Assembly: GCF_000142905.1 (NCBI RefSeq)
Contig: NW_013657678.1
Coordinates: 310,001 to 374,000 of the forward strand
Direction: 5' to 3'
DNA length: 64,000 nt
DNA from: Thecamonas trahens ATCC 50062
Taxonomy: Eukaryota; Protista; Apusomonadida
The translations under genes and the position numbers were made by a program. The notes beneath the pieces were generated by a model, which did not search any database, was not told the DNA's origin, and worked only from the letters and a program-made list of their open reading frames with translations. Positions 111 to 37,351 of this stretch are shown in pieces. Each line of letters begins with the position of its first letter. Position 1 is the first letter of the stretch.

Positions 111-1463
111 ATGGCTGAGGTCCACCAGGGTGTGCGGACGGGAGTGGCCGTGTACGCGGCAAATAGTCCGTGCGAGGACATGCACCTGCAGACCGCGGTG
201 GGAGGCGGAAGCGTGGTGGCGGTGTTGGACGGACACGGTGGGGCGCGGGCGGTCGCCTTTGCCCGCAACAAGCTTGTGGCTGCGCTCGGCGAGGCGTTGG
301 ATGGCGTACCTCCCACTGGAGTAGGTGCGGCCATGCAAGGAGCTCTGCTGGCAGTTGATGATGCGCTGCTGGCCGAGATCAAGGCCAAGCCGTATCCGAC
401 CACCGAGGCCGAGTTTGACGACAAGATCGGCCTGATGGAGCAAGGCGCGTGCGCGTCGCTGGTGTGGATCCCGACGCACGGGCGCGGCGAGATGGCGGTG
501 GCACATCTGGGTGATACGCGAGTTGTGGCCGGCTCGCCATTGGGCGTTGCCCACGCTCTCTGCGAGGTGCACAACGCCGCAGAGCCTGCCGAGCGAGCCC
601 GGCTCCAGGCTGCGCTGCCAAAGGACAAGCGCCTGTTTAAGACATATCCGGGGGCAGAGCCGGGCTCACTCAAGTACTATGTCAAGGGCATTGTGCAGGT
701 GACCCGAGCGCTCGGCGACGGATATCTCAAGGACCGCGAGCTAGCTCGACTGCACAACAAAGCCGCGCCACAGTTCAAGGTCTCGCCGCTGCCCAAAGAG
801 GCTGCGCCGTACGTCTCGCCGCACGCACAAGTCGCGTCGCTCGTCATCGGGCGCGGAAGCAAGGACGAGCCCGCCTTTGTCGTTGTTGCCTCCGATGGGC
901 TCTGGGACCACATGACCGACGGTGAGGTGACTCGCTTTGTGGCGAGCCGGCTGACCGCTGCCGCCCTGGCCGGCCCGGCCCGCTCCCAGATCTCTGACGC
1001 CGCCCTCAACGCCACAGCACAGGCTCTCATTGATGCTGTCCTTGACAAAGTTGCCGCCGGCTTTGAGCTCACCCGTGCCGAGCTCGAAGCCAAAGTCGCC
1101 GGCGCTCGCGGCGACTCGGGTCGGCGATCCTACCACGACGACATCACCGTCATTGTGGCGCTCCTCCCGGTCCCGCCTCCTGCAGCTGTGCCAGCTGAAG
1201 CAAGCTCGCCCATGGTGCGCCAGCCATCGCGTCCGCTCATGCCCATCGCCGAGGTCGGCCGTGACTTTTCGGTCGTCAACACCACAGCCAAGATGCAGGC
1301 GCTCTCGTCGCCGCCTGTCGCGCCGGTTCGGTCCCGCCGCAAGCGGGCTCCGCCGACGTCGACTGCGCCCTGCTCAGTCGAGCAGAGCCAAGCCGCTGAG
1401 AGCTCGCCACTACAAACCCGGGCCCAGCGCAGGCTGAAGCGGCAAAAGCGGTTGGGCCGGTGA
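111..1463 (+). CDS. PP2C/PPM family protein phosphatase
   Basis: Motifs CED, VLDGHGG, HLGDTR, TRALGD, ASDGLWD and HDDITVIV; basic low-complexity C-tail. Confidence 0.9.
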   Translation: MAEVHQGVRTGVAVYAANSPCEDMHLQTAVGGGSVVAVLDGHGGARAVAFARNKLVAALGEALDGVPPTGVGAAMQGALLAVDDALLAEIKAKPYPTTEAEFDDKIGLMEQGACASLVWIPTHGRGEMAVAHLGDTRVVAGSPLGVAHALCEVHNAAEPAERARLQAALPKDKRLFKTYPGAEPGSLKYYVKGIVQVTRALGDGYLKDRELARLHNKAAPQFKVSPLPKEAAPYVSPHAQVASLVIGRGSKDEPAFVVVASDGLWDHMTDGEVTRFVASRLTAAALAGPARSQISDAALNATAQALIDAVLDKVAAGFELTRAELEAKVAGARGDSGRRSYHDDITVIVALLPVPPPAAVPAEASSPMVRQPSRPLMPIAEVGRDFSVVNTTAKMQALSSPPVAPVRSRRKRAPPTSTAPCSVEQSQAAESSPLQTRAQRRLKRQKRLGR

Positions 1464-1623
1464 GTGTGCCTCCGTCTAGCACGTTTGCGCCATGCACGTG
1501 CAGCCCAAAGTGAAAGACTGGAATAGAACACTCTCCGTTCACTCGACTAAGGCCAGGCAAGCCACATCTGCAGTCGCCTCATCCTGCACGGCTGCCGACT
1601 TGTTTCTGGCCTCCACCGGACTC

Positions 1624-3949
1624 ATGTTTGGAAGCGCAAAGGTGGCTCTGTCGCTCCACGCGGCTGCCGCGGCCGGTGATGCGGCAAGGGTGGAGTCGCT
1701 TTTGGAAGCCGGGGCGGACGCAGGAGCAGGCAACGATCGCGGGTGGACGCCGATGTACGTGGCGGCACACTACGGACATGTCCACATCATCAAGATCCTT
1801 GCGGGAAGTCCAATAGCCGATGTCAATGCGCCCAACTCTCGCGGATGGACGCCGCTGCATGTGGCGGTGGTCTGCGGGCATGACGATGTGGTGGACTGGC
1901 TGGTCAGCTGCGGCGGAGCCGATGTGGATGCCGTCTCGGTTGCCGGCGAAACGCCGCTGATCCTTGCCGCCAAGCACAATCGGACCAACATGATTGACAT
2001 TCTCCAGTCCAGTGGAAAGGAACCGCCAGCAGGCTGGCTCGCATCGGGCTCGGTGGCTGAGTTTGATGCTCCGCGCGCCAAGCTCCTCGCGCCGGTGCCT
2101 CGCGACGCCGATGGCGCCGTCGACGTGGCTGCCTGGGTGGTGAAGATGGACGATGAAGGGGTGTTTCAAGCCCATGCCCAACAGTGGACACTAATGCACC
2201 TGGCTGCAGCCACAGAGTCTCCAGTTATGGTCCTTTGGCTCGTCACCCACTGCCCGGAATTGATCAGCGTCGTGGACGGCAACGGCGCGACGCCGCTGCA
2301 CTTCGGCACTGCCTCCATCCGAGTTGTGCAGATCCTGCACAGTCATGGTGCGAGCTTGTGCCAGCTTGATGCCAATCGCCACAGTCCTGTGGACAAGGCA
2401 ATTGCGGGTAACCACGTGCCGTCGCTCAAGTGGATGGCGCGATGCGCTGGAAAGGCGAGTTGCACCAAGTGCGGCACCATCCTCCTGCACTCGCTTGTCA
2501 TGTCCGGCAATGTCGAGACGCTAATGTCTGTCATGCTAACGTACACCGCAGGCATGTTGTCGTGGTCTTCGCCAAACGGGCAATCACCGCTTCATCTAGC
2601 TGTCGCGCTCGGCAACACGGCGATGGTCGAGGCACTGCTGGCGACAGCTGTCGGTCCAACGGCGGCCGTTCCTACTCGCACTGCCGAGGCCGACGAAGAT
2701 GACAAAAGTGCCATCGCATGGAAGAAGGAGGAGGCCCTGCTGCGTGGCGGATGGTCCAAAGGCGTGCGGTTTGCAGCCGACGCCGCGGACATCGTCTTTT
2801 CATGGCTCTCGATGCTCAACGAGGACGGCGAGGCACCGCTACACATTGCAGCCGCCCTTGCGACCGACAACGATGGCCTGGAGAACACCATGCATGTTGT
2901 TACTATGCTCCAAGTTCTCCGTGATGCCGGTGCCGACAAGACTCTGCGGAACAGTCGTGGGCAGCTCATCCTCCACATTGCGGTGGAGCATGCGATCGCG
3001 GCCACGAGCAAGATCCTGGATGCGATCCCCGGGGTCCTCCCGGTTACCCTTTTCTGGAGTACGTTATGATGTTTAACGCCGACGCGAACGCATGCGACGG
3101 CAGCGGCTTGACCGCGCTTCAATGCGCAGCGACTGCAGGCGCGACAACGGTGATCCGAGTCCTGCTCAAGGGATGCAGCGTCGACGCGCGCGGAGCGGAC
3201 CACACCACTGCGCTTCACTGCGCAGCGGCTGGCAACCACGCCAATGCCGTGTGCATGCTTGTAGCCGAGGGTGCCGACACCGAGGCTCGTGACAGGCTGG
3301 GCGCTGTCCCGTTACACTACGCCGCTAAGGCATCTGCGCTCGAGTCTGTTGCCGCTCTCATCCGGTGCGGCGCCGACGTCGACGCGCGTAATGACCGGCT
3401 CGAGACTCCGCTCCATGTTGCGGCCAAAACGATGGTGCCAGCACCTTGGCGCGGCTTCTCCAAGCCGGTGGCTCATCCGGCTCACGGTCTCTCATCGGTG
3501 GCACCGTTGTCCATGCCGCGCTCGACTCGCCAGCTTGTGTAGCTGTGCTGCTCTCGCATGGTGCTGACCTGCGGGCGCGCGACGAGGCTGGGCGAACTCT
3601 CGCGCACTTGGCCGCCATGGTGGGCCGGCTGGATGTCATCGAAGTGCTGGCCGTTCACGATATTTGCCTTGTGGCCAAAGCCGGCGTCGACGAACTTGGC
3701 GCCACTCCGCAGCTCTACGCTTCGGCGTGCGGCGACGTGGCCATGGTGGCCTATCTCATCCTCTCCGGCGTAGACTCTACCCAGTTGGCATCTGATGTCG
3801 CCATCGGTAACCTCTGTATTCCTGAGACCATTGTGACCTTTCTCGCTTCCGTTGAGCTCTTGGGAGCTACCACCCGCGACGCTGTCATCGCAGCACTTCC
3901 CGAGGCCAGCGCCCGCGCCGTACTTGCCGGCGCTGCCCTCCCGCGCTGA
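1624..3949 (+). CDS. Multi-ankyrin-repeat protein split by two apparent 1-nt frameshifts (~3050, ~3428)
   Basis: GWTPLHxA-type ankyrin repeats continue across ORFs 1492-3069, 3066-3542 and 3446-3949. Adding one T at 3050-3053 and one A at 3426-3429 fuses them. Confidence 0.8.
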
Positions 3950-27466: not shown

Positions 27467-30106
27467 GAAGAGGGCGACGTGGCATTTGAGGAGGATGTGG
27501 TGACAGAGCCGTACTCGCTTCGGGCGTGGCTTCGGTACCTCAAGCACAAGCGGTCTGCAGCAGCCGAGGCTCGCGACGCGCTGTATGAGCGGGCACTGGC
27601 GGCGCTGCCAGGGAGCTACAAGATGTGGCGGCGGTATCTGACGGAGCGGGTGCAGCGAGTGCGCAGCTTTCCGGTCACGGCCGACCAGTGGGCGGCGGTG
27701 GGCAATGTGTTTGAGCGGGCGTTGGTGTTTATGCACAAGATGCCGCGGATGTGGCTCTGCTACCTCGAGTTTCTCTTTGCCTGGCACGCTGTCTCGCGAG
27801 TCCGCCCCGTCACCGACCGCGCTCTGCAGGCGCTGCCGATCACGCAGCACGCGCGGATCTGGGAACCCGTGCTCGAGTACGTGTCGGGGCTTGCGGTGCC
27901 GATTCCGGCCACGGGCGTCTCGCTCTGGCGGCGGTATCTCAACATTGCGCCTGCACGGCGCGAGGACTATGTCGAGTACCTCATGGCGGTGGAGCACTAC
28001 GACGAGGCCGCCAAGGAGCTGGTTGTCCTGCTCGACACGGCCGCCAGCGACTCGGACGCCGCTGAGGCGATTACCAAGCCGCGTCACGAGCTCTGGCTCC
28101 TGCTCTGCTCGCTCATTTCCGAGCACGCGCCAGAGCTCAAGTCGATTCCGGTCGAGGCCATTCTGCGGACGGGCGTGACTCAGTTTAGCGACCAGGTCGG
28201 CACGTTGTGGACGTCGCTTGGTGACTACTTTATCCGCCTCGCCCAGTTTGACAAGGCCCGCGACGTGTACGAGGAGGGCATGGCGGCGGTGACGACCGTC
28301 CGCGACTTTACCCTTGTTTTCGACGCCTACGTCCAGTTTGAGGATGCCATGCTCTCGACCAAGCTGCAGATGCTGGATGAGGCCAGGGCAAAGGCTGAGG
28401 CGGGCGCCGGCGGTGGCAGCGGAAACGGCGCTCTCGACCGCGATCTTGTCGAGCTCGACGCCGACCTGCAGCTCCGGTTCGAGCGCTACCAACACCTTAT
28501 CGACCGGCGGCCGCTCCTGGTCAACGCTGTCCTGCTCCGGCAGAACCCGTCGAATGTCCACGAGTGGCTCAAGCGGGTCGAGTTGTACAAGGCGGCGCAG
28601 GATGGAGTCAACGTTGTCGACACCTACACTCGCGCGCTCGAGGCTGTCGAGCCGGCTACAGCTGCTGGCCCGCTCCACGAGCTCTGGATTGGCTTTGCCT
28701 CGTTCTACGAGCTTGCTGGGCAAGATGCAGATGCTGCGCGCGCCATTTACGAGAGGGCTGTGGCGGCGGATGCAGCTTCGGTCGACTCGCTCGTCGCCAT
28801 TTGGCTGGCCTACGCCGAGTTTGAGGGCCGGGTCGGGAGGTATGACGCCGCGCTGGCACTGCTGCAGCGGGCCACCACCATTCCCAAGCAATTTCTCTCG
28901 TCGGCGCGCCGGACTGGGCCGGCAGCAGTCTCGTACTACGACGACGGGCTCGCTCCGGCGCTCCGCCTCTTCAAGTCGTCCAAGCTCTGGGCGGCGTATG
29001 TCGACCTTGCCGAGGCGCTCGGCACGCTCGAATCGACGAAGGCCGTGTACGAGGAGATTCTCGAGCTCCGGGTCGCCACGCCCAAGCTCATTCTCAACTA
29101 CGCTGGCATGCTCCTCGACGCCGAGTACTTTGAGCAGGCCTTTGCCGTCTTTGAGCGTGGCATCGAGCTCTTTGGCTACCCGCACGTTCTTCCGCTGTGG
29201 CGCGCGTACCTCACTCACTTTGTCCGGCGCTACGGCGGCTCGGCGCTGATGCGGACCCGCCAGCTGTTTACCACCGCCCTCCAGGGCGCGCCGCGGCCGT
29301 ACGCCAAGGAGCTTTATCTCCAGGCCATTGCCTTTGAGGCCGAGCACGGATCGCACAAGCGCGAGTTTGACCTCTACGCCAAGGCAGTCGACGTTGTGCC
29401 GACCGCCGATGCCCAGGAGATCTACACCCGCTGGATCAAGGCGGCCGCTGGCGTCCACGGTGTCTCGGCGACTCGGCCCATCTACGAGCAGGCTATTGCC
29501 AAGCTCAATGACTCGGGCGCCCGCGCCATGTCGCTCAAGTATGCCCAGCTCGAGCTGGCCATGGGCGACCTCGTCCGCGCCCGCGCCCTCTACGCCCATG
29601 CCTCGCAGTTTTGCCCGCCCGACCGCGACAAGGCGTTCTGGGCCGAGTGGGAAAAGTTCGAGTCGAACCACGGCAACGAGGACACCTTCCGCGAGATGCT
29701 CCGCATCAAGCGCTCGGTCCGCGCCCAGTATCACTCGATTATTTCGGACGACGTCATTGCCGCCGTCGCCGCCGCCCGCAAAGACGCGCCGCCGTCGGCG
29801 CCGCCTTCGCGTAAGCGCGACCGTACCGAGCTCGACGCCGATGCGCCTGGTGCGGCCATGCCACCGCCAGCGTCCGAGGACGAGCCGGCTGCCAAGCGGC
29901 ATGTCTCGCTCGCCCCCGGTGCGTCGCGGGGCATCCAGTTTGTGGCCTCGTCGGCTTCGATCGCAGGCAATGTCGACGATGGTGTGCCGGCGCCCAACCC
30001 CGACGCCATTGCCATGGACGATTCCGACGACTCCGACTCGGACGGCGACGACGGCGATGAGCCGCCGATGCCGGTCGGTTCTGTTCCCGAGGGTGTGTTC
30101 TCGTGA
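27467..30106 (+). CDS. SYF1: Pre-mRNA splicing factor SYF1/XAB2 (HAT repeats), 5' exon in the gap
   Basis: LYERAL..LPGSYK.W, MHKMPR.W, VLLRQNP.NVHEW and HGNEDTFREMLRIKRSV; ACTCAC...TAG acceptor at 27466. Confidence 0.93.
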   Translation, partial: EEGDVAFEEDVVTEPYSLRAWLRYLKHKRSAAAEARDALYERALAALPGSYKMWRRYLTERVQRVRSFPVTADQWAAVGNVFERALVFMHKMPRMWLCYLEFLFAWHAVSRVRPVTDRALQALPITQHARIWEPVLEYVSGLAVPIPATGVSLWRRYLNIAPARREDYVEYLMAVEHYDEAAKELVVLLDTAASDSDAAEAITKPRHELWLLLCSLISEHAPELKSIPVEAILRTGVTQFSDQVGTLWTSLGDYFIRLAQFDKARDVYEEGMAAVTTVRDFTLVFDAYVQFEDAMLSTKLQMLDEARAKAEAGAGGGSGNGALDRDLVELDADLQLRFERYQHLIDRRPLLVNAVLLRQNPSNVHEWLKRVELYKAAQDGVNVVDTYTRALEAVEPATAAGPLHELWIGFASFYELAGQDADAARAIYERAVAADAASVDSLVAIWLAYAEFEGRVGRYDAALALLQRATTIPKQFLSSARRTGPAAVSYYDDGLAPALRLFKSSKLWAAYVDLAEALGTLESTKAVYEEILELRVATPKLILNYAGMLLDAEYFEQAFAVFERGIELFGYPHVLPLWRAYLTHFVRRYGGSALMRTRQLFTTALQGAPRPYAKELYLQAIAFEAEHGSHKREFDLYAKAVDVVPTADAQEIYTRWIKAAAGVHGVSATRPIYEQAIAKLNDSGARAMSLKYAQLELAMGDLVRARALYAHASQFCPPDRDKAFWAEWEKFESNHGNEDTFREMLRIKRSVRAQYHSIISDDVIAAVAAARKDAPPSAPPSRKRDRTELDADAPGAAMPPPASEDEPAAKRHVSLAPGASRGIQFVASSASIAGNVDDGVPAPNPDAIAMDDSDDSDSDGDDGDEPPMPVGSVPEGVFS

Positions 30107-30843: not shown

Positions 30844-33564
30844 CTACGTCTGCGGCGGAGCGTCGGTGTCAAATGTGACCGAGTCCGTCGGAAGGACCGA
30901 GAACGTGAGCGAAAAGCGGTCGACGGCGGCGGCGCAGGTGACGTTGGCACACCGATAGACGTCGGTGGCAAAGAACCGTCGGAGGTAGCTGGAGCACATG
31001 GGGCAGGCCGATGGGACACCGTGGACGTAGTACTCGAGGCAGAGTGAGAGGATACGGGACCGCGGCCAGGTTCTTGCAGCCGGCACGTTAGAGAGGACCA
31101 GGAGCTGGGTCAGCTGCTCAGTGGAGAGGGTGGAGAGGACCTTGTAGGCAGCGCGCGCGCGCGGCGAGAGGGTCGAGACTTGGGTCACAGCGTTGATGGC
31201 AAAATACTCGAGCTGTGGCGCTGCAGAAATGGTCGCCGGGTTGACGGCCCGCACGTCGGCAGGCAGCATCGACGCCGAGAGCGCGACCAGGACCGGCAGG
31301 CCTATAACATGGAGGAGGAGCGACGGCGACACCATGATTCCGGTGATGTCGAGGATCTGCAGCCGGCGGCAAGATTGGACAATGTTGAGCAGCGGCTTCT
31401 GCGAGGTGAGCGAGTAGCAGCGCGAGAGACGGAGCGAGGCGAGCGAGCGGCCTAGGTCGGCGATGTGGCGCGCCACTGGCGGGGTGACTCCGAGCGAGCC
31501 GGAAAGGTCGAGCTTCTGCAGGCTGGGGCACGAGGTGATGACCCGGATGAGGTCTGCCGGCGCGTACCGCTTGGCTCCGCACAGTGTTGTTGCCGCCGAC
31601 AGCGAGAGCAGACCTGGGCAGTGGGTGGCGACCGAGCTGAGGCCCTTGCCGGTGATCTGCGAGCAGAACGAGATGTCGAGCGCCTTGAGTGTGGCGCCGA
31701 TGCCGACAAGCATCCTGTCCAGCGAGGCGTCGGTGACCCGGAAGAGCGACTGGATGTTGAGCTCGGTGATTTTCCAAGCCGGCGGCCCGCGGAGCTGGAG
31801 CTCGACGCGCGGGCACTTGGCCAGAAGCAGCGACGACGGGACAAACGTCGCACCGGGGAGCCTGAAGAAGCTCTCCAGCAGCTCATCGTCCAGTGCGCGC
31901 TGTGCCACAAGTGCCATGAACATGTTGCTCACAGCGAGGACGTCGCGTTCGGCGGCGGCTGGCGCCGGCCGATGAGTCTCGGTGGGAGCAAGCGAGCTGA
32001 CAACCTGGTGCGCCGCGTCGCGCGACTGTGGTGTGGCCAGCGCGTCGGCGAGCGCAATCCGGGCGAGCTCACGCAGCGACGACCCTGCCGGCGCTGCCGC
32101 CGCGGGCCTGTTCAACAGGCCCGGGGCTTGTGGAAAGGCGGCTGGACTGCCTGGCCCGCTCGGCGAGCGGACCGGCGACTTGACTCCGCCAGCGCCGCCG
32201 GCAGCAGCGATCGACAGCTGCGGCGCCGACGAGAGCGCGGTAAAGCTGGGCGCGGCCGGCGAGGTAGGGCGCGGGATAGCACTGGTGTTGCGCCCGACGT
32301 CCAGGTGGTGGTGTGACTCGGACGTGCGCCGAGCCAATGGCGACTTAGCGGCGGCGGCGGCGGCTGGCGGCTTGCGCTGCTCCCCGCTCCCGGCGACTGG
32401 CGAGCTCTGGCCGTGCGCGACCGGCGGCGGCGGCGGTGGCGCAATCGGGAGCATGTCAATTAGCGAGAGAGACGACCGCGAGCTGCGGTCGAGGTTAAAC
32501 ACCTTGTAGTTGACGACTTCGCACTTTGACACGCCACGGTTGCCCTCGCAATACGAGTTCCAGCGGAGCTCCTCCAGCGAGACATTGCGGTACTCAGGCA
32601 TGGCAGTGATGCACGTCAGGCGTTCGACGCGGCGGACCGGGGCAACCGGAACCTCGACCGGGGCGTAGGCAGCCTTGTCCGAGCCCACATCGTGCGAGCC
32701 GCGGCGCGAGGTCGGCGCGCTTCGGCCCTGGCGCTTCTTGAAATCCATCGAGGGCATGAACATGAGCGACTGGGTCGCAGCCCGCGGCGCGTTGGCCCGC
32801 CCGAACCGCATCGGCAGCGCCGATAGCGCACGGTCGACCATACCCAGGTCGGGCACACTCTGCGAGACAATCGCGAGATTGTGGGCAGACATGCCCGAGA
32901 GCACGTTGAACGACGAGCCTGACATCGGGTTGGCTTGCGAGATGCCGGCACCGCCAAGCGGGCTGCCGAGCGTACCGCCGAGCGAGCTTCCGAGCGGAGC
33001 TGCACCGAGGGACTCGAGCGACGACGAGCCAGCGGGCGGGCCGCCCGACGCCGAAGACGAGGTGCGGCGGCGCTTGGCCGGTGCCGGCGGCGACGGCGAG
33101 CTTTGCTGCGGCTGCTTCGGCGAGCCCGCCAGCAGCGGCTTGTTGTGCGGCGACGGCGAGGCCACGCCGTCGGCGTTGATGAACAGCCACTCCAGGAGGT
33201 CGTCGATACGCGGACCGGCAACCAGATACTCGTTGCCTTCGATCGAGAAGCGAAGGTGCAGGTTGGGCGTGTCGAGGTCGACCACCACGTCTGTGCGTGG
33301 GGCGCTGGGCAAGCCAAGGTGACCGGCACCTTTGAAACCACCCAGCGGACGTCCGCCGAGCTGTGGAAGCACGTTGTGCCCGTCCAGGGCAGAGGCCGGT
33401 GCCTCTGTAGGCCGGCGGTGGTCACGTCCCGGAGCGTCCAAAGTTGGCTGGCCAATATTGGACGCCGACCGCAGCAACTGGTGTGAGGACTTCATCTTCT
33501 CAGAGGAGAAGACAAAGCCATCCCGTCCAGACTCACCACCCTCGACCTTAGTACGCATGCTCAT
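30844..33564 (-). CDS. GLEBS-motif + AMN1/FBXL-type LRR + PADR1-like zinc-domain protein
   Basis: CITAMPEYRNVSLEELRWNSY (GLEBS-like); cysteine-containing LRRs (LDISFCSQIT, LDLSGS, LRLSRC); C-terminal CPMC...YRC...C. Start uncertain; a possible upstream exon is 33718-33686. Confidence 0.75.
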   Translation of the reverse strand: MSMRTKVEGGESGRDGFVFSSEKMKSSHQLLRSASNIGQPTLDAPGRDHRRPTEAPASALDGHNVLPQLGGRPLGGFKGAGHLGLPSAPRTDVVVDLDTPNLHLRFSIEGNEYLVAGPRIDDLLEWLFINADGVASPSPHNKPLLAGSPKQPQQSSPSPPAPAKRRRTSSSASGGPPAGSSSLESLGAAPLGSSLGGTLGSPLGGAGISQANPMSGSSFNVLSGMSAHNLAIVSQSVPDLGMVDRALSALPMRFGRANAPRAATQSLMFMPSMDFKKRQGRSAPTSRRGSHDVGSDKAAYAPVEVPVAPVRRVERLTCITAMPEYRNVSLEELRWNSYCEGNRGVSKCEVVNYKVFNLDRSSRSSLSLIDMLPIAPPPPPPVAHGQSSPVAGSGEQRKPPAAAAAAKSPLARRTSESHHHLDVGRNTSAIPRPTSPAAPSFTALSSAPQLSIAAAGGAGGVKSPVRSPSGPGSPAAFPQAPGLLNRPAAAAPAGSSLRELARIALADALATPQSRDAAHQVVSSLAPTETHRPAPAAAERDVLAVSNMFMALVAQRALDDELLESFFRLPGATFVPSSLLLAKCPRVELQLRGPPAWKITELNIQSLFRVTDASLDRMLVGIGATLKALDISFCSQITGKGLSSVATHCPGLLSLSAATTLCGAKRYAPADLIRVITSCPSLQKLDLSGSLGVTPPVARHIADLGRSLASLRLSRCYSLTSQKPLLNIVQSCRRLQILDITGIMVSPSLLLHVIGLPVLVALSASMLPADVRAVNPATISAAPQLEYFAINAVTQVSTLSPRARAAYKVLSTLSTEQLTQLLVLSNVPAARTWPRSRILSLCLEYYVHGVPSACPMCSSYLRRFFATDVYRCANVTCAAAVDRFSLTFSVLPTDSVTFDTDAPPQT

Positions 33565-33704
33565 CGTATTCTCCCACTCCCTGTAGGGTGTGGCAAAGCT
33601 AAGCAAGAGTGGTGTCCCCACCTCCGTCCCACTTTGTAGCCCTCCTGGTCTTTCTCGGCCACTTCCACTGTCGTCCGCCACTCACCTTGCCTGACTGACC
33701 AGCA

Positions 33705-33800
33705 AACGACTTGTCCATATTGATTGATTCCTGTCAATACCCTGTCCTGTCCAATATATTGCTTCAATCGTTGATAGTTGTTTGTCCAATCAATGCATGG
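33705..33800. promoter_or_regulatory. AT-rich island with repeated TGTCCAAT/CAAT motifs in a divergent promoter
   Basis: TGTCCAAT twice plus the variants TGTCCATA and TGTCAATA, between the LRR gene and PIGO. Confidence 0.4.
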
Positions 33801-34130
33801 CTTGCCATTTCCCCCTCCCCTACCCCCCCCCCCCCCCTTCCCCCCCTTGTCATTTTTGTTTTTTTTAGCCTCCACCACCTGGTTTACCCGCTCTCCTGTC
33901 CCGCACCGGCAACCCAGAGAAAACAAAAAAATCAGCCCCCCCCCCCACTGCCGGGCTCCCCCCCTCCCCCCCCCTTCAGTCCTGGCTGGCTGCCCGCGCT
34001 TCCCCGCGCTGCCAACTCAAACTCAAACGCGAGCGCCCTCCCCCTCCCCTTCCTCCCCTCTCCCCTTTCCACTCTCTATCACTGCGCACACGCTACCACA
34101 TCACTCAGACCAGTCTCGCCACTTTGCTGC

Positions 34131-37100
34131 ATGGCGGTCCGTGGCTACCCACACGTAGCGTTGCCGCTGGCCACTGTCCTTCTCCTCGCCGCCCTCTCGG
34201 CGTACCTCTTCTCCTCGGGCTTCCTCCTCTCACGGGTCACGGTCCCCACCACTGCGAGCATCGATCAGCAGCGTCCGCCCTGGGTCCCAGCTCCGGCTCC
34301 GGCTCCGGCTCCATCGAGCGCAGACTCGAGCTCCAATACGGACTCTCGCTCGTCAGCCACAGCGGCGCCGACGGTCCACGAGCCTAAGCGGATCGTGATG
34401 GTTGTCATCGACGCCCTCCGCTACGACTTTGCCTTTCCGCCGCCGCCGTCGTCGGACGAGTTCAATCCAGCGTTCCATGGCCGGCTGCCTGTGCTGGAAG
34501 ACATTGCCGGGCCTGGCGGGGCCGGATTGGCGGTGCGGCTGCAGGCGGATCCGCCGACAACCACCATGCAGCGGCTCAAGGCGCTGATGTCTGGCGGCCT
34601 GCCGGCATTCATCGAGATCGGGTCCAACTTTGACGCCCAGGCGCTTGACGAAGACTCGCTGCCGCTGCAAATGCTGGGCGGCGGGAAGCGTGTGGCGTTT
34701 ATGGGCGACGACACGTGGGGTGGCCTGTTTCCGGGCCTGCTCGGCGCCGAGCCCGCGCTCTTTGACTCGTTCAACGTCAAGGATCTCGACACGGTCGACG
34801 CCGGCATCGAGGCCCGCCTCTTCCCGCTGCTGGAGCAGCCTGCAGACGGTGACGCTTACGACGCCATCATTGCGCACTTTCTCGGCGTCGATCACGCGGG
34901 CCACACCTATGGGCCGAACCATCCGCGGATGTCGGACAAGCTCGATCAGATGAATACCGATATCGCCCGCGTTGTTGCCGCCCTTGCTGACGACGACCTG
35001 CTGGTGATCCTCGGCGACCACGGCATGACGTCTGACGGTGGGCACGGCGGTGCCACGCTTCTGGAGACCGGCTCGGTTCTGGTGGCGTACTCCCCGGCAC
35101 GCGCCTACTCTTGCCTGAGCACGGCGCTTCCGGCAGGCACCGTTGTTGATGCGTACCAGATCGACATGGTGCCCGCGCTGGCGACGCTGCTTGGCCTTCC
35201 GATTCCGTTTTCATCGATGGGTGTGGCCTTTGAGCCGCTCCTCTGTGCACTTCCGCTCTCCCGCCTCGAGACTGCCCGCTTTGCCAACGCGGCACAGATC
35301 TCGGGCTACCTGCACGCGTACGGCGCGACGCCGCGCGGTGCGGCGGTGGCTGCCAAGCTCTCTCCTCTCCTCGCCGAGCTCGATGCTGCGCTGGCGAGCA
35401 GCGGCGAGGGCCGGAGCCATGTGCTCCCGCCGCTGCTGCGGAGCCTCTCGGACGCTGCCCGCGATCATTTCACCACCTTTGACCTTGTGGCCATGGCCAG
35501 CGGCCTGGTGTGCGGTGTGCTGGCGCTCTGCTGGCTAATCGCCATTGCTGCGGTCGTCCGTGCACCGCAGGCCTCGTGCTCGCCGACAGCGCTCACCATC
35601 CACGCCAGCATTGCCGCTGCTGCGGTATTCTACGTTGTCTACCGAATGCCGCAGGGCATGGTGGGCGTGCCGAGCGTTGCAGACATGCTCGGCACCGCCG
35701 GGTCGGGAACGCGGATCTCGGTCGGCATCGCGGCTGGGTGCATGGCTGGCAGCCTGCTCGCAGCGTGGTACATGATGAGCGAGGTGTGCGGCGGAGTGGC
35801 CGAGCTTGCAGCCGGCATGCGGCTGGTCAACGGGCCATGGTACGGCGCCGGTGCGGTGTTTGTTGTCCTGGTTGCCGTGGCGCAGCTCTCCAACTCGTAC
35901 GTTGAGGCGCTCGCGTCGGTGGTCCGGTACCTCACGCTCACCGGCGTGCTCCTCTCGTGGCGGGCCGGCGCCAACGCCTACGTCGAGCTTGGGCAGCCGC
36001 TGCTGCCGGCCAAGGCATGGACCATTCCACTCAGCTCGTTGGCCGGCCCGCCGCTGTGGCATGTTGTGCACGTGCTGTGGCTTGCAGTGACGGTGCTGGC
36101 GAGCGGGTATTCAGTGTGCGCCCCGGAGCGGGCGAGCTGCGCCGGCTCATCGTACGAGGTGCCGCTGCTGCTGCAGCTCTCAGCGCCGCTGCTAGTCGGC
36201 CTCGGCGTTCACCGAATTGTGCGTGGGCGACGCAACGAGCTCGAGCGCGGCGAGGTGGTGGCCAAGTATCTTGTGCCGGGCATCGGCGGGCTCATCTCTG
36301 CGCACTGGACCCTACACGCGCTCTCGATCCTCCCGGTCTCGAACGAATCGCCAGTCGGCATCATGGCCAACGTCGCGCTGCCGCGTGCAGTGTACGGCCT
36401 CGCCTTTGCCGCACTGGCGCTTGTGGTGGGAACGCCCAAGTTTGCTTTGACCCAGCTAGTGCCTGCGCGCCGGGAGGGCGAGGATGCGCGTCTGCTGGTG
36501 GTCGGCTTCTCGACAGCGCTTGGCTCGACGCTCCTCTGCGCGTGGGCGGTGGTGGCGCTGGTAGCGTCGATGGTTCTCGGCTTCCGCGCCGGGTGGTGGC
36601 TGCTGCTGGTTGCGGCGTGGATGGCTGCAGCAAGCAAGGCAGCGCACATGCTGTCGGGCCTCCACGCCAAGGCCAAGGGCCTGTACCGACGCAAGGGCGT
36701 GCAGATCATGCACGACCGAGCGCGCGACTCGTTTGATGGGGTCAAGAAGCGGCCGGGCCTTGTGCGGAGCGCCGGACGAGCGGCCGACGTGCCGGGGCGG
36801 TTCTTTGGCTCGACGGCAGTGCTCTGGTCGCTCGGCTTGCTGCTCTTTTACTTTGCGTCGGGCGGTCGGTACGCCTTTGCCTCGCTCCGTGTCGACGCCG
36901 CCTTTGTCGGCTTTGTTCGGCTCGACTCGCAGGTTGTGGGCGGGGCGCTTGTGGCACTGGCAACGCTCGCCGCGCCGATCTTGTTTGCACTCGGCATGCC
37001 CATGGCTGTGGTCTGGTTTGAGAGCCACAAGCTCCAGCGCGACTACCACCGCGACGCGCTCCTGCGGCGGATCCGGTACCCTCTGGCAGCCGGCGCCATG

Positions 37101-37351
37101 GTCCCTCTCGTCTCGCTTGTCTTTCCGAGGCTTTCCTCATGGTCGAGAACCGGCACCTGATGGCGTTCCGTGTCTTTGCGCCCAAGTTTGCCTTTGATGC
37201 GGTGCTCGCTCTCTCGGTACTGGCTATCTCGCTCTGCGCGTGGCTCCTCACCAAGCGGATTGTCCGCTACCTGGCCGACGCCGTGGCGCCGCACAGCCAC
37301 ACCGACGGCAGCTCTGGCGAGAACATTGTTGAGGCGGCAGCGTCTTTGTGA
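34131..37351 (+). CDS. PIGO: GPI ethanolamine phosphate transferase 3 (PIG-O/Gpi13), apparent frameshift ~37123
   Basis: IDALRYDF, DPPTTTMQRLK, MGDDTW, HFLGVDHAGH and GDHGM; multi-TM C-half; RHLMAFRVFAPKF lies in the shifted frame. Confidence 0.9.

Follow-up and report, generated by a model that had tools for sequence, protein, structure and literature searches.

A Nup98-type GLEBS motif in a leucine-rich repeat protein

Why should a protein that is not a nucleoporin carry the GLEBS motif through which Nup98 contacts the mRNA-export factor Rae1? This question is raised by a gene of the protist Thecamonas trahens, found on the minus strand of the 64,000-nt stretch of genomic DNA analysed here (the window) as a single intronless open reading frame (ORF; 30844..33681) whose first ATG, at position 33564, yields a protein of 906 amino acids (aa). 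An earlier reading of the window, made from its letters alone (the sequence-only reading), had proposed that this gene joins a Nup98-type GLEBS motif, a leucine-rich repeat (LRR) solenoid and a C-terminal domain like the Zn3 (PADR1) module of PARP1. Its coordinates and quoted peptides proved correct, as judged from the ORF list and from the translation of 30844..33564, which is 100% identical to the deposited T. trahens protein P0001 (NCBI, UniRef, EukProt). GC content at third codon positions (GC3) ranges from 0.72 to 0.90 between codon ~62 and the stop, GLEBS included, and from 0.58 to 0.62 in the flanking DNA. Such coding-type composition throughout indicates that the GLEBS, the linker and the LRR share one translated frame, with no chance extension of the ORF.

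The peptide singled out as GLEBS in the sequence-only reading spans aa 316-344 (window 32533-32619). Profile searches bore out this assignment: the Pfam model PF21240 (Nup98_GLEBS; curated cut-off, 27 bits) matched significantly, with 28.7 bits for the whole protein, 32.3 bits for a 107-aa piece and 33.4 bits (E 1.9e-6) when all six frames of the 28.7-Mb genome were scanned. That scan returned exactly two sites. The second one, at 30.4 bits, lies on contig 54 (G000:C54:279424-279489) within an ORF rich in G-F-G-type repeats (877..1953, minus strand, of locus L002), which is the Nup98-like phenylalanine-glycine (FG)-repeat nucleoporin gene of T. trahens. Both GLEBS peptides are 44% identical over 27 aa (BLASTP, E 4e-6), and the motif of the LRR protein outscores that of the Nup98-like gene itself. 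A search of the organism's own genome with the GLEBS piece found no paralogues.

According to PMC3783196, which cites the crystal structure, the Rae1-Nup98 interface relies on two conserved salt bridges, formed by Nup98 E201/E202 with Rae1 R172/R216. The adjacent glutamates E331 and E332 are kept in the LRR protein, within the stretch S-L-E-E-L-R-W, and the motif of the Nup98-like gene reads S-A-L-E-L-R-W, with one canonical glutamate of the two. Indeed, the C-terminal arm of the motif in the LRR protein retains all residue classes, the aromatic Tyr and the glutamate pair among them. As the sequence-only reading had also stated, FG repeats and an autoprotease domain are both missing: the former do not occur in the sequence and no such Pfam family was matched at E<=10. 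At this threshold, the families found in the whole protein were GLEBS, two LRR families and a weak ligase zinc finger, with no others. Identity of the protein as the Nup98/Nup116 nucleoporin was considered and rejected, given that it carries neither FG/GLFG repeats nor an autoproteolytic domain and that the Nup98-like gene is located elsewhere, on contig 54.

Rae1, its paralogue and Bub3 as candidate partners

T. trahens Rae1 was located by a degenerate pattern and then checked against PDB 3MMY_A (E 2.6e-81, end-to-end alignment). The gene is intact and intronless (G000:C10:206462-207463, plus strand; loci L005/L008), and its product is identical to XP_013760589.1 of T. trahens ATCC 50062, the strain from which the window comes. 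R145 and R192 of this protein align to human R172 and R216, so both arginines are conserved. Complex prediction of this C10 Rae1 with aa 285-360 of the LRR protein scored 0.95 in three of three runs, whereas the best of three controls reached 0.02; as a similar complex (Rae1-Nup98) has already been solved, this pass speaks for likeness to GLEBS and not for binding. Of 78 solved complexes, 51 attain the mark applied, as do 2 of 108 mismatched pairs. Contact agreement among the runs was 91% or higher, with a partner predicted local distance difference test (pLDDT) of 60. In the predicted interface, aa 312-338 would lie on the propeller's top face, where E332 would touch R145. A Pfam score above the cut-off, the presence of both glutamates and this controlled prediction with the organism's own Rae1 together uphold the proposed Nup98-type GLEBS.

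The genome encodes two further propellers of this class: a second Rae1-type protein (G000:C24:120125-121027, minus strand; locus L009), which is 45% identical to C10 Rae1, and Bub3 (G000:C7:425406-426242, minus strand; locus L010). Any of the three could be the partner of the motif. If the paralogue or Bub3 took this place, the same architecture would point to a spindle, kinetochore or checkpoint role and not to mRNA export. The paralogue is almost as near human Rae1 as C10 Rae1 is (268 and 276.7 bits, respectively), the pass with C10 Rae1 does not identify which family member binds, and Bub3 is known to bind the GLEBS motifs of Bub1, BubR1 and BuGZ (PMC4337726, PMC9203020). Moreover, as the genome has two Rae1 paralogues and two GLEBS motifs of Pfam level, a one-to-one pairing is conceivable. 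Nonetheless, the motif is matched by the Nup98-type Pfam model and is similar to the GLEBS of the genome's Nup98-like gene, and the one pair modelled, that with C10 Rae1, passed with the high score given above. We regard a partner other than C10 Rae1, with the change of role that it would bring, as rather unlikely.

An FBXL-type LRR solenoid without a detectable F-box

The repeats, called AMN1/FBXL-type in the sequence-only reading, proved to be FBXL-type by both sequence and fold. For the LRR, a phmmer search of the PDB returned matches with E values from 5.6e-11 to 1e-5, among them FBXL17 (5.6e-11), FBXL2 (2.1e-10) and SKP2 (7e-6). AlphaFold2 (AF2) modelled aa 597-795 with pLDDT of 70-95 and ~8 strands, and Foldseek matched this model to FBXL2 (E 5.1e-9), FBXL17, SKP2, TIR1, KDM2B and Rad7. 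The precomputed family of the LRR is PF25372 (LRR_FBXL15). Among the fold matches, Rad7 (PDB 5zb2_A) had the highest query TM-score (0.46). The Rad7/Rhp7 DNA-repair proteins, which combine a zinc treble clef with LRR_FBXL15, are also language-model neighbours of aa 285-906 (0.84-0.85, a lead only) and represent a second case of repeats of this type joined to a zinc module.

The nearest relatives of the LRR by sequence and fold (FBXL2, FBXL17, SKP2 and TIR1, in addition to Rad7) include receptors of Skp1-cullin-F-box ligases, and the PDB alignments begin at W597, where FBXL proteins leave their F-box. The protein could be a cullin-RING substrate receptor whose F-box or BC-box, in front of the LRR, is degenerate and escapes detection, with the GLEBS recruiting Rae1 as substrate or co-receptor, or tethering the ligase to Rae1 complexes. 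Against this, no F-box, F-box-like or SOCS family was matched by Pfam at E<=10 over the whole protein, and aa 538-596 are of low model confidence (AF2 pLDDT <50 across aa 538-595) and not conserved in P0043, the only full-length relative (see below). Furthermore, HMMER alignments that extend into aa 561-596 set these residues against LRR units, not F-boxes, of the matched proteins. An F-box ahead of the LRR is rejected on current evidence, and we hold the ligase-receptor alternative to be quite improbable.

A small family that shares the LRR and the C-terminal domain

HMMER searches with the full protein covered all 1.84 billion cluster representatives. About 1280 matches were LRR-only, two also carry the C-terminal domain and no match combines all three, in line with the view of the sequence-only reading that the combination had not been described; nor did we find a paper that joins GLEBS, LRR and PADR1. 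The first of the two relatives, P0003, is a metatranscriptome fragment of 317 aa (JGI contig of 1007 bases) that shares 42% identity over aa 594-895 and whose N-terminus is truncated by the contig end. The second, P0043, stems from a EukProt transcriptome; its ORF is complete, encodes 767 aa and shares 29% identity over aa 558-886, with a long disordered N-terminal half that cannot be aligned. Apart from the protein itself, a word-index protein search with aa 300-906 retrieved nothing but a weak match to a Tremella F-box protein, and a metagenome scan with alignment A1 gave one locus (L014), which encodes an LRR protein of ordinary type that lacks the zinc module. As judged from sequence, the LRR and the PADR1-like domain define a small conserved family in three organisms, including T. 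trahens. The layout of GLEBS, LRR and PADR1-like domain is documented in Thecamonas only and may be lineage-specific.

A separate observation concerns P0049 and its cluster members P0152-P0158 (JGI/ENA metagenomes). These proteins of ~550 aa combine an N-terminal globular part without a Pfam match, an FG-like stretch and three tandem Nup98-type GLEBS motifs (75.6 bits), which makes the family another non-nucleoporin-looking GLEBS carrier.

A divergent PADR1-like domain at the C-terminus

In PARP1, PADR1 is mainly an interdomain contact module and also makes DNA-backbone contacts. A genome scan with PF08063 hit only the PARP1 gene on contig 37, whose PADR1 scores 51.7 and 30.7 Pfam bits. In the LRR protein, the four putative zinc-ligand cysteines (C854, C857, C872 and C877) are all present. 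Their first knuckle, G-V-P-x-x-C-P-x-C, is invariant in P0001, P0003 and P0043 and common to T. trahens PARP1, and the positions of Cys 3 and Cys 4 vary among the three family members. No paralogues of the C-terminal domain were found in the own-genome search.

Smith-Waterman alignment to the PADR1 of T. trahens PARP1 scored 54 for P0001, 80 for P0003 and 64 for P0043, compared with ~24+-4 for composition-preserving shuffles (Gumbel P of 5e-5, 2e-8 and 9e-6, respectively). The P0001 score was equalled by 1 of 3000 of its own shuffles (23.9+-4.2), and all three alignments fall in one register, anchored on the first knuckle. With hhalign, the two-sequence profile A3 aligned with a probability of 93.3% (E 2.8e-7) over 80 columns that take in the helical subdomain and the ribbon, and a noisier three-sequence profile with 82.7%; the target was the single PADR1 of T. 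trahens PARP1. Two word-index searches for relatives of PARP1 PADR1 gave no match at E<=10, the query's own protein included. In the ESM Atlas, the three nearest structural neighbours of the model of aa 789-902 were PADR1-bearing clusters, with TM-scores of 0.59, 0.55 (a plant PARP) and 0.48. Searches with a low-confidence AF2 model of the domain were too weak to count alone: Foldseek placed 2riq at E 6.2, with no match at E<=0.001, and VIA-align gave 2riq a Z of 4.6 (root-mean-square deviation 5.7 over 65 residues), tied for best with a LEM domain at Z 4.8. The nearest Pfam hint for the C-terminal piece was a generic C4 finger, DNA_ligase_ZBD, at a weak E of 0.024. Taken together, alignments and models make it quite probable that the domain is homologous to PADR1; it lies outside the Pfam PADR1 family as this is defined.

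A candidate nuclear adaptor for a Rae1-family propeller

Starting from the observed motif, folds, homologies and rarity of the family, we infer that Rae1 would be bound in the cell and that the LRR and the zinc module would hold further partners. We propose, as on balance probable, that the protein is a nuclear adaptor which docks on a Rae1-family propeller via its GLEBS and offers the LRR and the PADR1-derived zinc module to these partners. The sequence-only reading had already envisaged an adaptor for Rae1/Bub3-class propellers; its domain calls are largely right, and the substrate binding by the LRR and the DNA-damage-type role of the zinc domain that it assumed are conjecture. The protein's long, disordered N-terminal half would present one Nup98-type GLEBS peptide, which would cross the top face of the WD40 propeller with E331/E332 opposite the two conserved arginines. 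This binding mode would exclude Nup98 from the same propeller, and the protein would thereby define a second Rae1 pool away from the pore, in parallel to the sharing of Bub3 among Bub1, BubR1 and BuGZ. The FBXL-type solenoid would serve as a protein-binding surface, capped by the divergent helical and zinc-ribbon module of PADR1 type. A nuclear location is probable from the basic cluster K-R-R-R, which is the sole stretch of at least four consecutive K/R in the 906-aa protein.

A bolder extension, which we consider quite unlikely, is that Thecamonas runs two parallel Rae1 systems, with one paralogue at the pore via Nup98 and the other in the nucleoplasm via the LRR-PADR1 protein. The GLEBS of the LRR protein would then be nearer the canonical motif than the pore's own, and PADR1 would act as a portable non-PARP module that links Rae1-bound cargo (a messenger ribonucleoprotein or a factor of the spindle) either to chromatin or to a partner related to DNA lesions or to PARP.

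Several observations weigh against the adaptor proposal. The PF21240 match covers profile positions 18-39 of 39 only, that is, the C-terminal arm. The N-terminal hairpin arm is equally unmatched in the genome's Nup98-like gene, and its lack may be a lineage trait rather than a loss of function. As for the complex prediction, besides gauging likeness to a solved complex, its pass may reflect the model's memory of Rae1-Nup98, and the method cannot separate Rae1 from close cousins. At the other end of the protein, the Pfam PADR1 models (PF21728 and PF08063) found no match at E<=10 in P0001, its C-terminal piece, P0003 or P0043, and PDB sequence searches with the own piece, the P0003 piece and profiles A2 (dominated by the LRR of P0043) and A3 did not reach human PARP1. 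AF2 models of the C-terminal half and of the domain alone, each built with a three-sequence alignment, returned confident helices but a ribbon with pLDDT <50. In addition, the second knuckle is shortened (C-x4-C) and lacks the Trp that T. trahens PARP1 and P0003 keep. The likeness to PARP1 Zn3 put forward in the sequence-only reading stands in part: it is supported by the whole-domain hhalign alignment and by the ESM Atlas neighbours, but not by the Pfam profiles, by the second knuckle or by a confident model of the ribbon.

The last point against the proposal comes from P0043, the sole full-length relative, in which no GLEBS was matched by Pfam and the similarity to the motif was not significant (P 0.15). 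The motif is consequently not a conserved feature of the LRR + PADR1-like family, and the search for orthologues bore fruit for the LRR and the PADR1-like domain but not for the GLEBS. This fits a reading in which LRR + PADR1-like is the conserved unit and the GLEBS-like peptide, gained recently in this lineage alone or arisen by convergence, has no role in binding. The N-terminal half of P0043 cannot be aligned and the motif itself lies in fast-evolving, low-complexity sequence, both as this reading would have it. It is nevertheless hard to reconcile with a genome-wide E of 1.9e-6 at one of only two sites in 28.7 Mb, with the retention of every residue class of the C-terminal arm, both glutamates and the Tyr among them, or with a complex score so far above that of the best control. 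A peptide devoid of any binding role is, to our mind, quite unlikely, and the adaptor remains our preferred reading.

Layout of the gene and its surroundings

The features of the gene are collected in Table 1. At its 5' end, codons 1-61 (window 33384-33564) have a GC3 of just 0.58-0.66, atypical in comparison with the remainder of the ORF. Translation may actually begin at a later Met (M24), or this end of the gene may simply be unusual; the deposited model begins at 33564.

Table 1. Features of the LRR protein gene in window coordinates
Feature	Position	Strand	Basis or remarks
Coding sequence, complete, no intron	30844..33564	-	906 codons + TAG stop (30844-30846)
Ser/Pro/Ala/Gly-rich N-terminal region, aa 1-311, probably disordered	32632..33564	-	no Pfam match at E<=10
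K-R-R-R, aa 164-167, basic cluster like a monopartite nuclear localization signal	33064..33075	-	inference only
GLEBS motif; Pfam-matched core aa 317-338 (32551-32616)	32551..32631	-	PF21240, BLASTP, complex model
Pro/Ala/Ser-rich linker, aa 352-556	31897..32511	-	no Pfam match, no domain detected
FBXL-type (LRR_FBXL15-like) LRR solenoid, aa 597-795, ~8 repeats	31180..31776	-	PDB phmmer, AF2, Foldseek, PF25372
PADR1-like domain, aa 809-892: three-helix N-subdomain (aa ~801-848), then Cys4 zinc ribbon	30889..31140	-	
Zinc-ribbon core, aa 849-880: G-V-P-x-x-C854-P-x-C857, x14, C872, x4, C877	30925..31020	-	

Within the N-terminal region, a short and possibly ordered hydrophobic element (aa ~97-127, window 33184-33276) resembles aa 50-76 of P0043. 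The pattern L-x-F ... G-x-E ... L-L-x-W is common to this element in both full-length family members, and the similarity of aa 97-127 to P0043 aa 50-76 in the alignment is not significant (P 0.09).

The LRR protein gene is flanked by a SYF1-like gene on one side (27479..30106, plus strand) and by a long ORF on the other (33711..37160, plus strand), and these neighbours give no sign of a functional cluster around it. Just upstream of the SYF1-like gene, at ~26.5-27.5 kb of the window, there is a run of N that appears as X in the ORF translation. GC content is as low as 0.465 between 26 and 28 kb and 0.483 between 48 and 50 kb, which probably reflects assembly gaps.

Implications

To our knowledge, propellers of the Rae1/Bub3 class have no known handle other than GLEBS peptides, and the known carriers of these are few. 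T. trahens is a marine flagellate, a free-living protist that branches close to the base of the opisthokonts. If the proposal holds, a Nup98-type GLEBS outside the pore would be direct evidence for pore-independent Rae1 adaptors in such a protist, in parallel to the sharing of Bub3 in animals and fungi. As to PADR1, which the literature treats as a PARP-only domain of unclear role, a divergent copy fused to an LRR in at least three organisms would offer a new context for the domain's own role. These implications are bounded by the tiny size of the family and by the occurrence of the GLEBS motif in one species only, for which we know of no established genetics.

Comparison with known systems

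The closest counterpart of the motif is the GLEBS of Nup98/Nup116 (PF21240), with which it shares the hydrophobic pattern of the C-terminal arm, the two glutamates, the terminal Tyr, a disordered setting and, in the model, a predicted position on the top face of Rae1 beside the two conserved arginines (PMC3783196). It differs in that the N-terminal arm of PF21240 is unmatched and in its host, an LRR and zinc-module protein without FG/GLFG repeats or an autoproteolytic domain.

Among non-nucleoporins, Bub1, BubR1 and BuGZ/ZNF207 are established carriers of GLEBS motifs, and all of them bind Bub3 (PMC4337726, PMC9203020, PMC4602037). As in these proteins and in Mad3, the GLEBS of the T. trahens protein lies in a disordered region and would tether a Rae1/Bub3-class propeller to other domains; BuGZ, moreover, pairs its GLEBS with zinc fingers (PMC9203020, PMC4602037, PMC4337726). 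On the other hand, BuGZ, Bub1 and BubR1 bind Bub3 through motifs that are not of the Nup98-type PF21240, contain neither LRR nor PADR1, and show no sequence relation to the T. trahens protein beyond the motif.

The C-terminal module resembles PARP1 Zn3 (PADR1; PF21728 + PF08063; 2riq) in having a helical subdomain followed by a Cys4 ribbon with the same first knuckle, whereas its cysteine spacing is C-x2-C-x14-C-x4-C as opposed to C-x2-C-x12-C-x9-C in T. trahens PARP1, and the zf-PARP, WGR and catalytic domains of PARP1 are all missing from the LRR protein. PADR1 is held to occur in (clade-1) PARPs only (PMC2964712), apart from copies outside PARPs that have been noted in Tetrahymena (PMC6502085).

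The solenoid is of the same LRR subtype, by sequence and fold, as those of FBXL2, FBXL17, SKP2 and the LRR_FBXL15 family, but unlike FBXL proteins the T. trahens protein has no detected F-box or SOCS/BC-box. Rad7/Rhp7, which acts in DNA repair, likewise joins FBXL-type LRR to a zinc module, a likeness that we take as a lead only, and differs in placing this module, a treble clef in Rhp7, at the N-terminus, where the T. trahens protein has its PADR1-like module at the C-terminus. The principle of a GLEBS carried by a non-nucleoporin is already known; the fusion of GLEBS, LRR and PADR1-like domain is real, rare, previously undescribed and known from one species.

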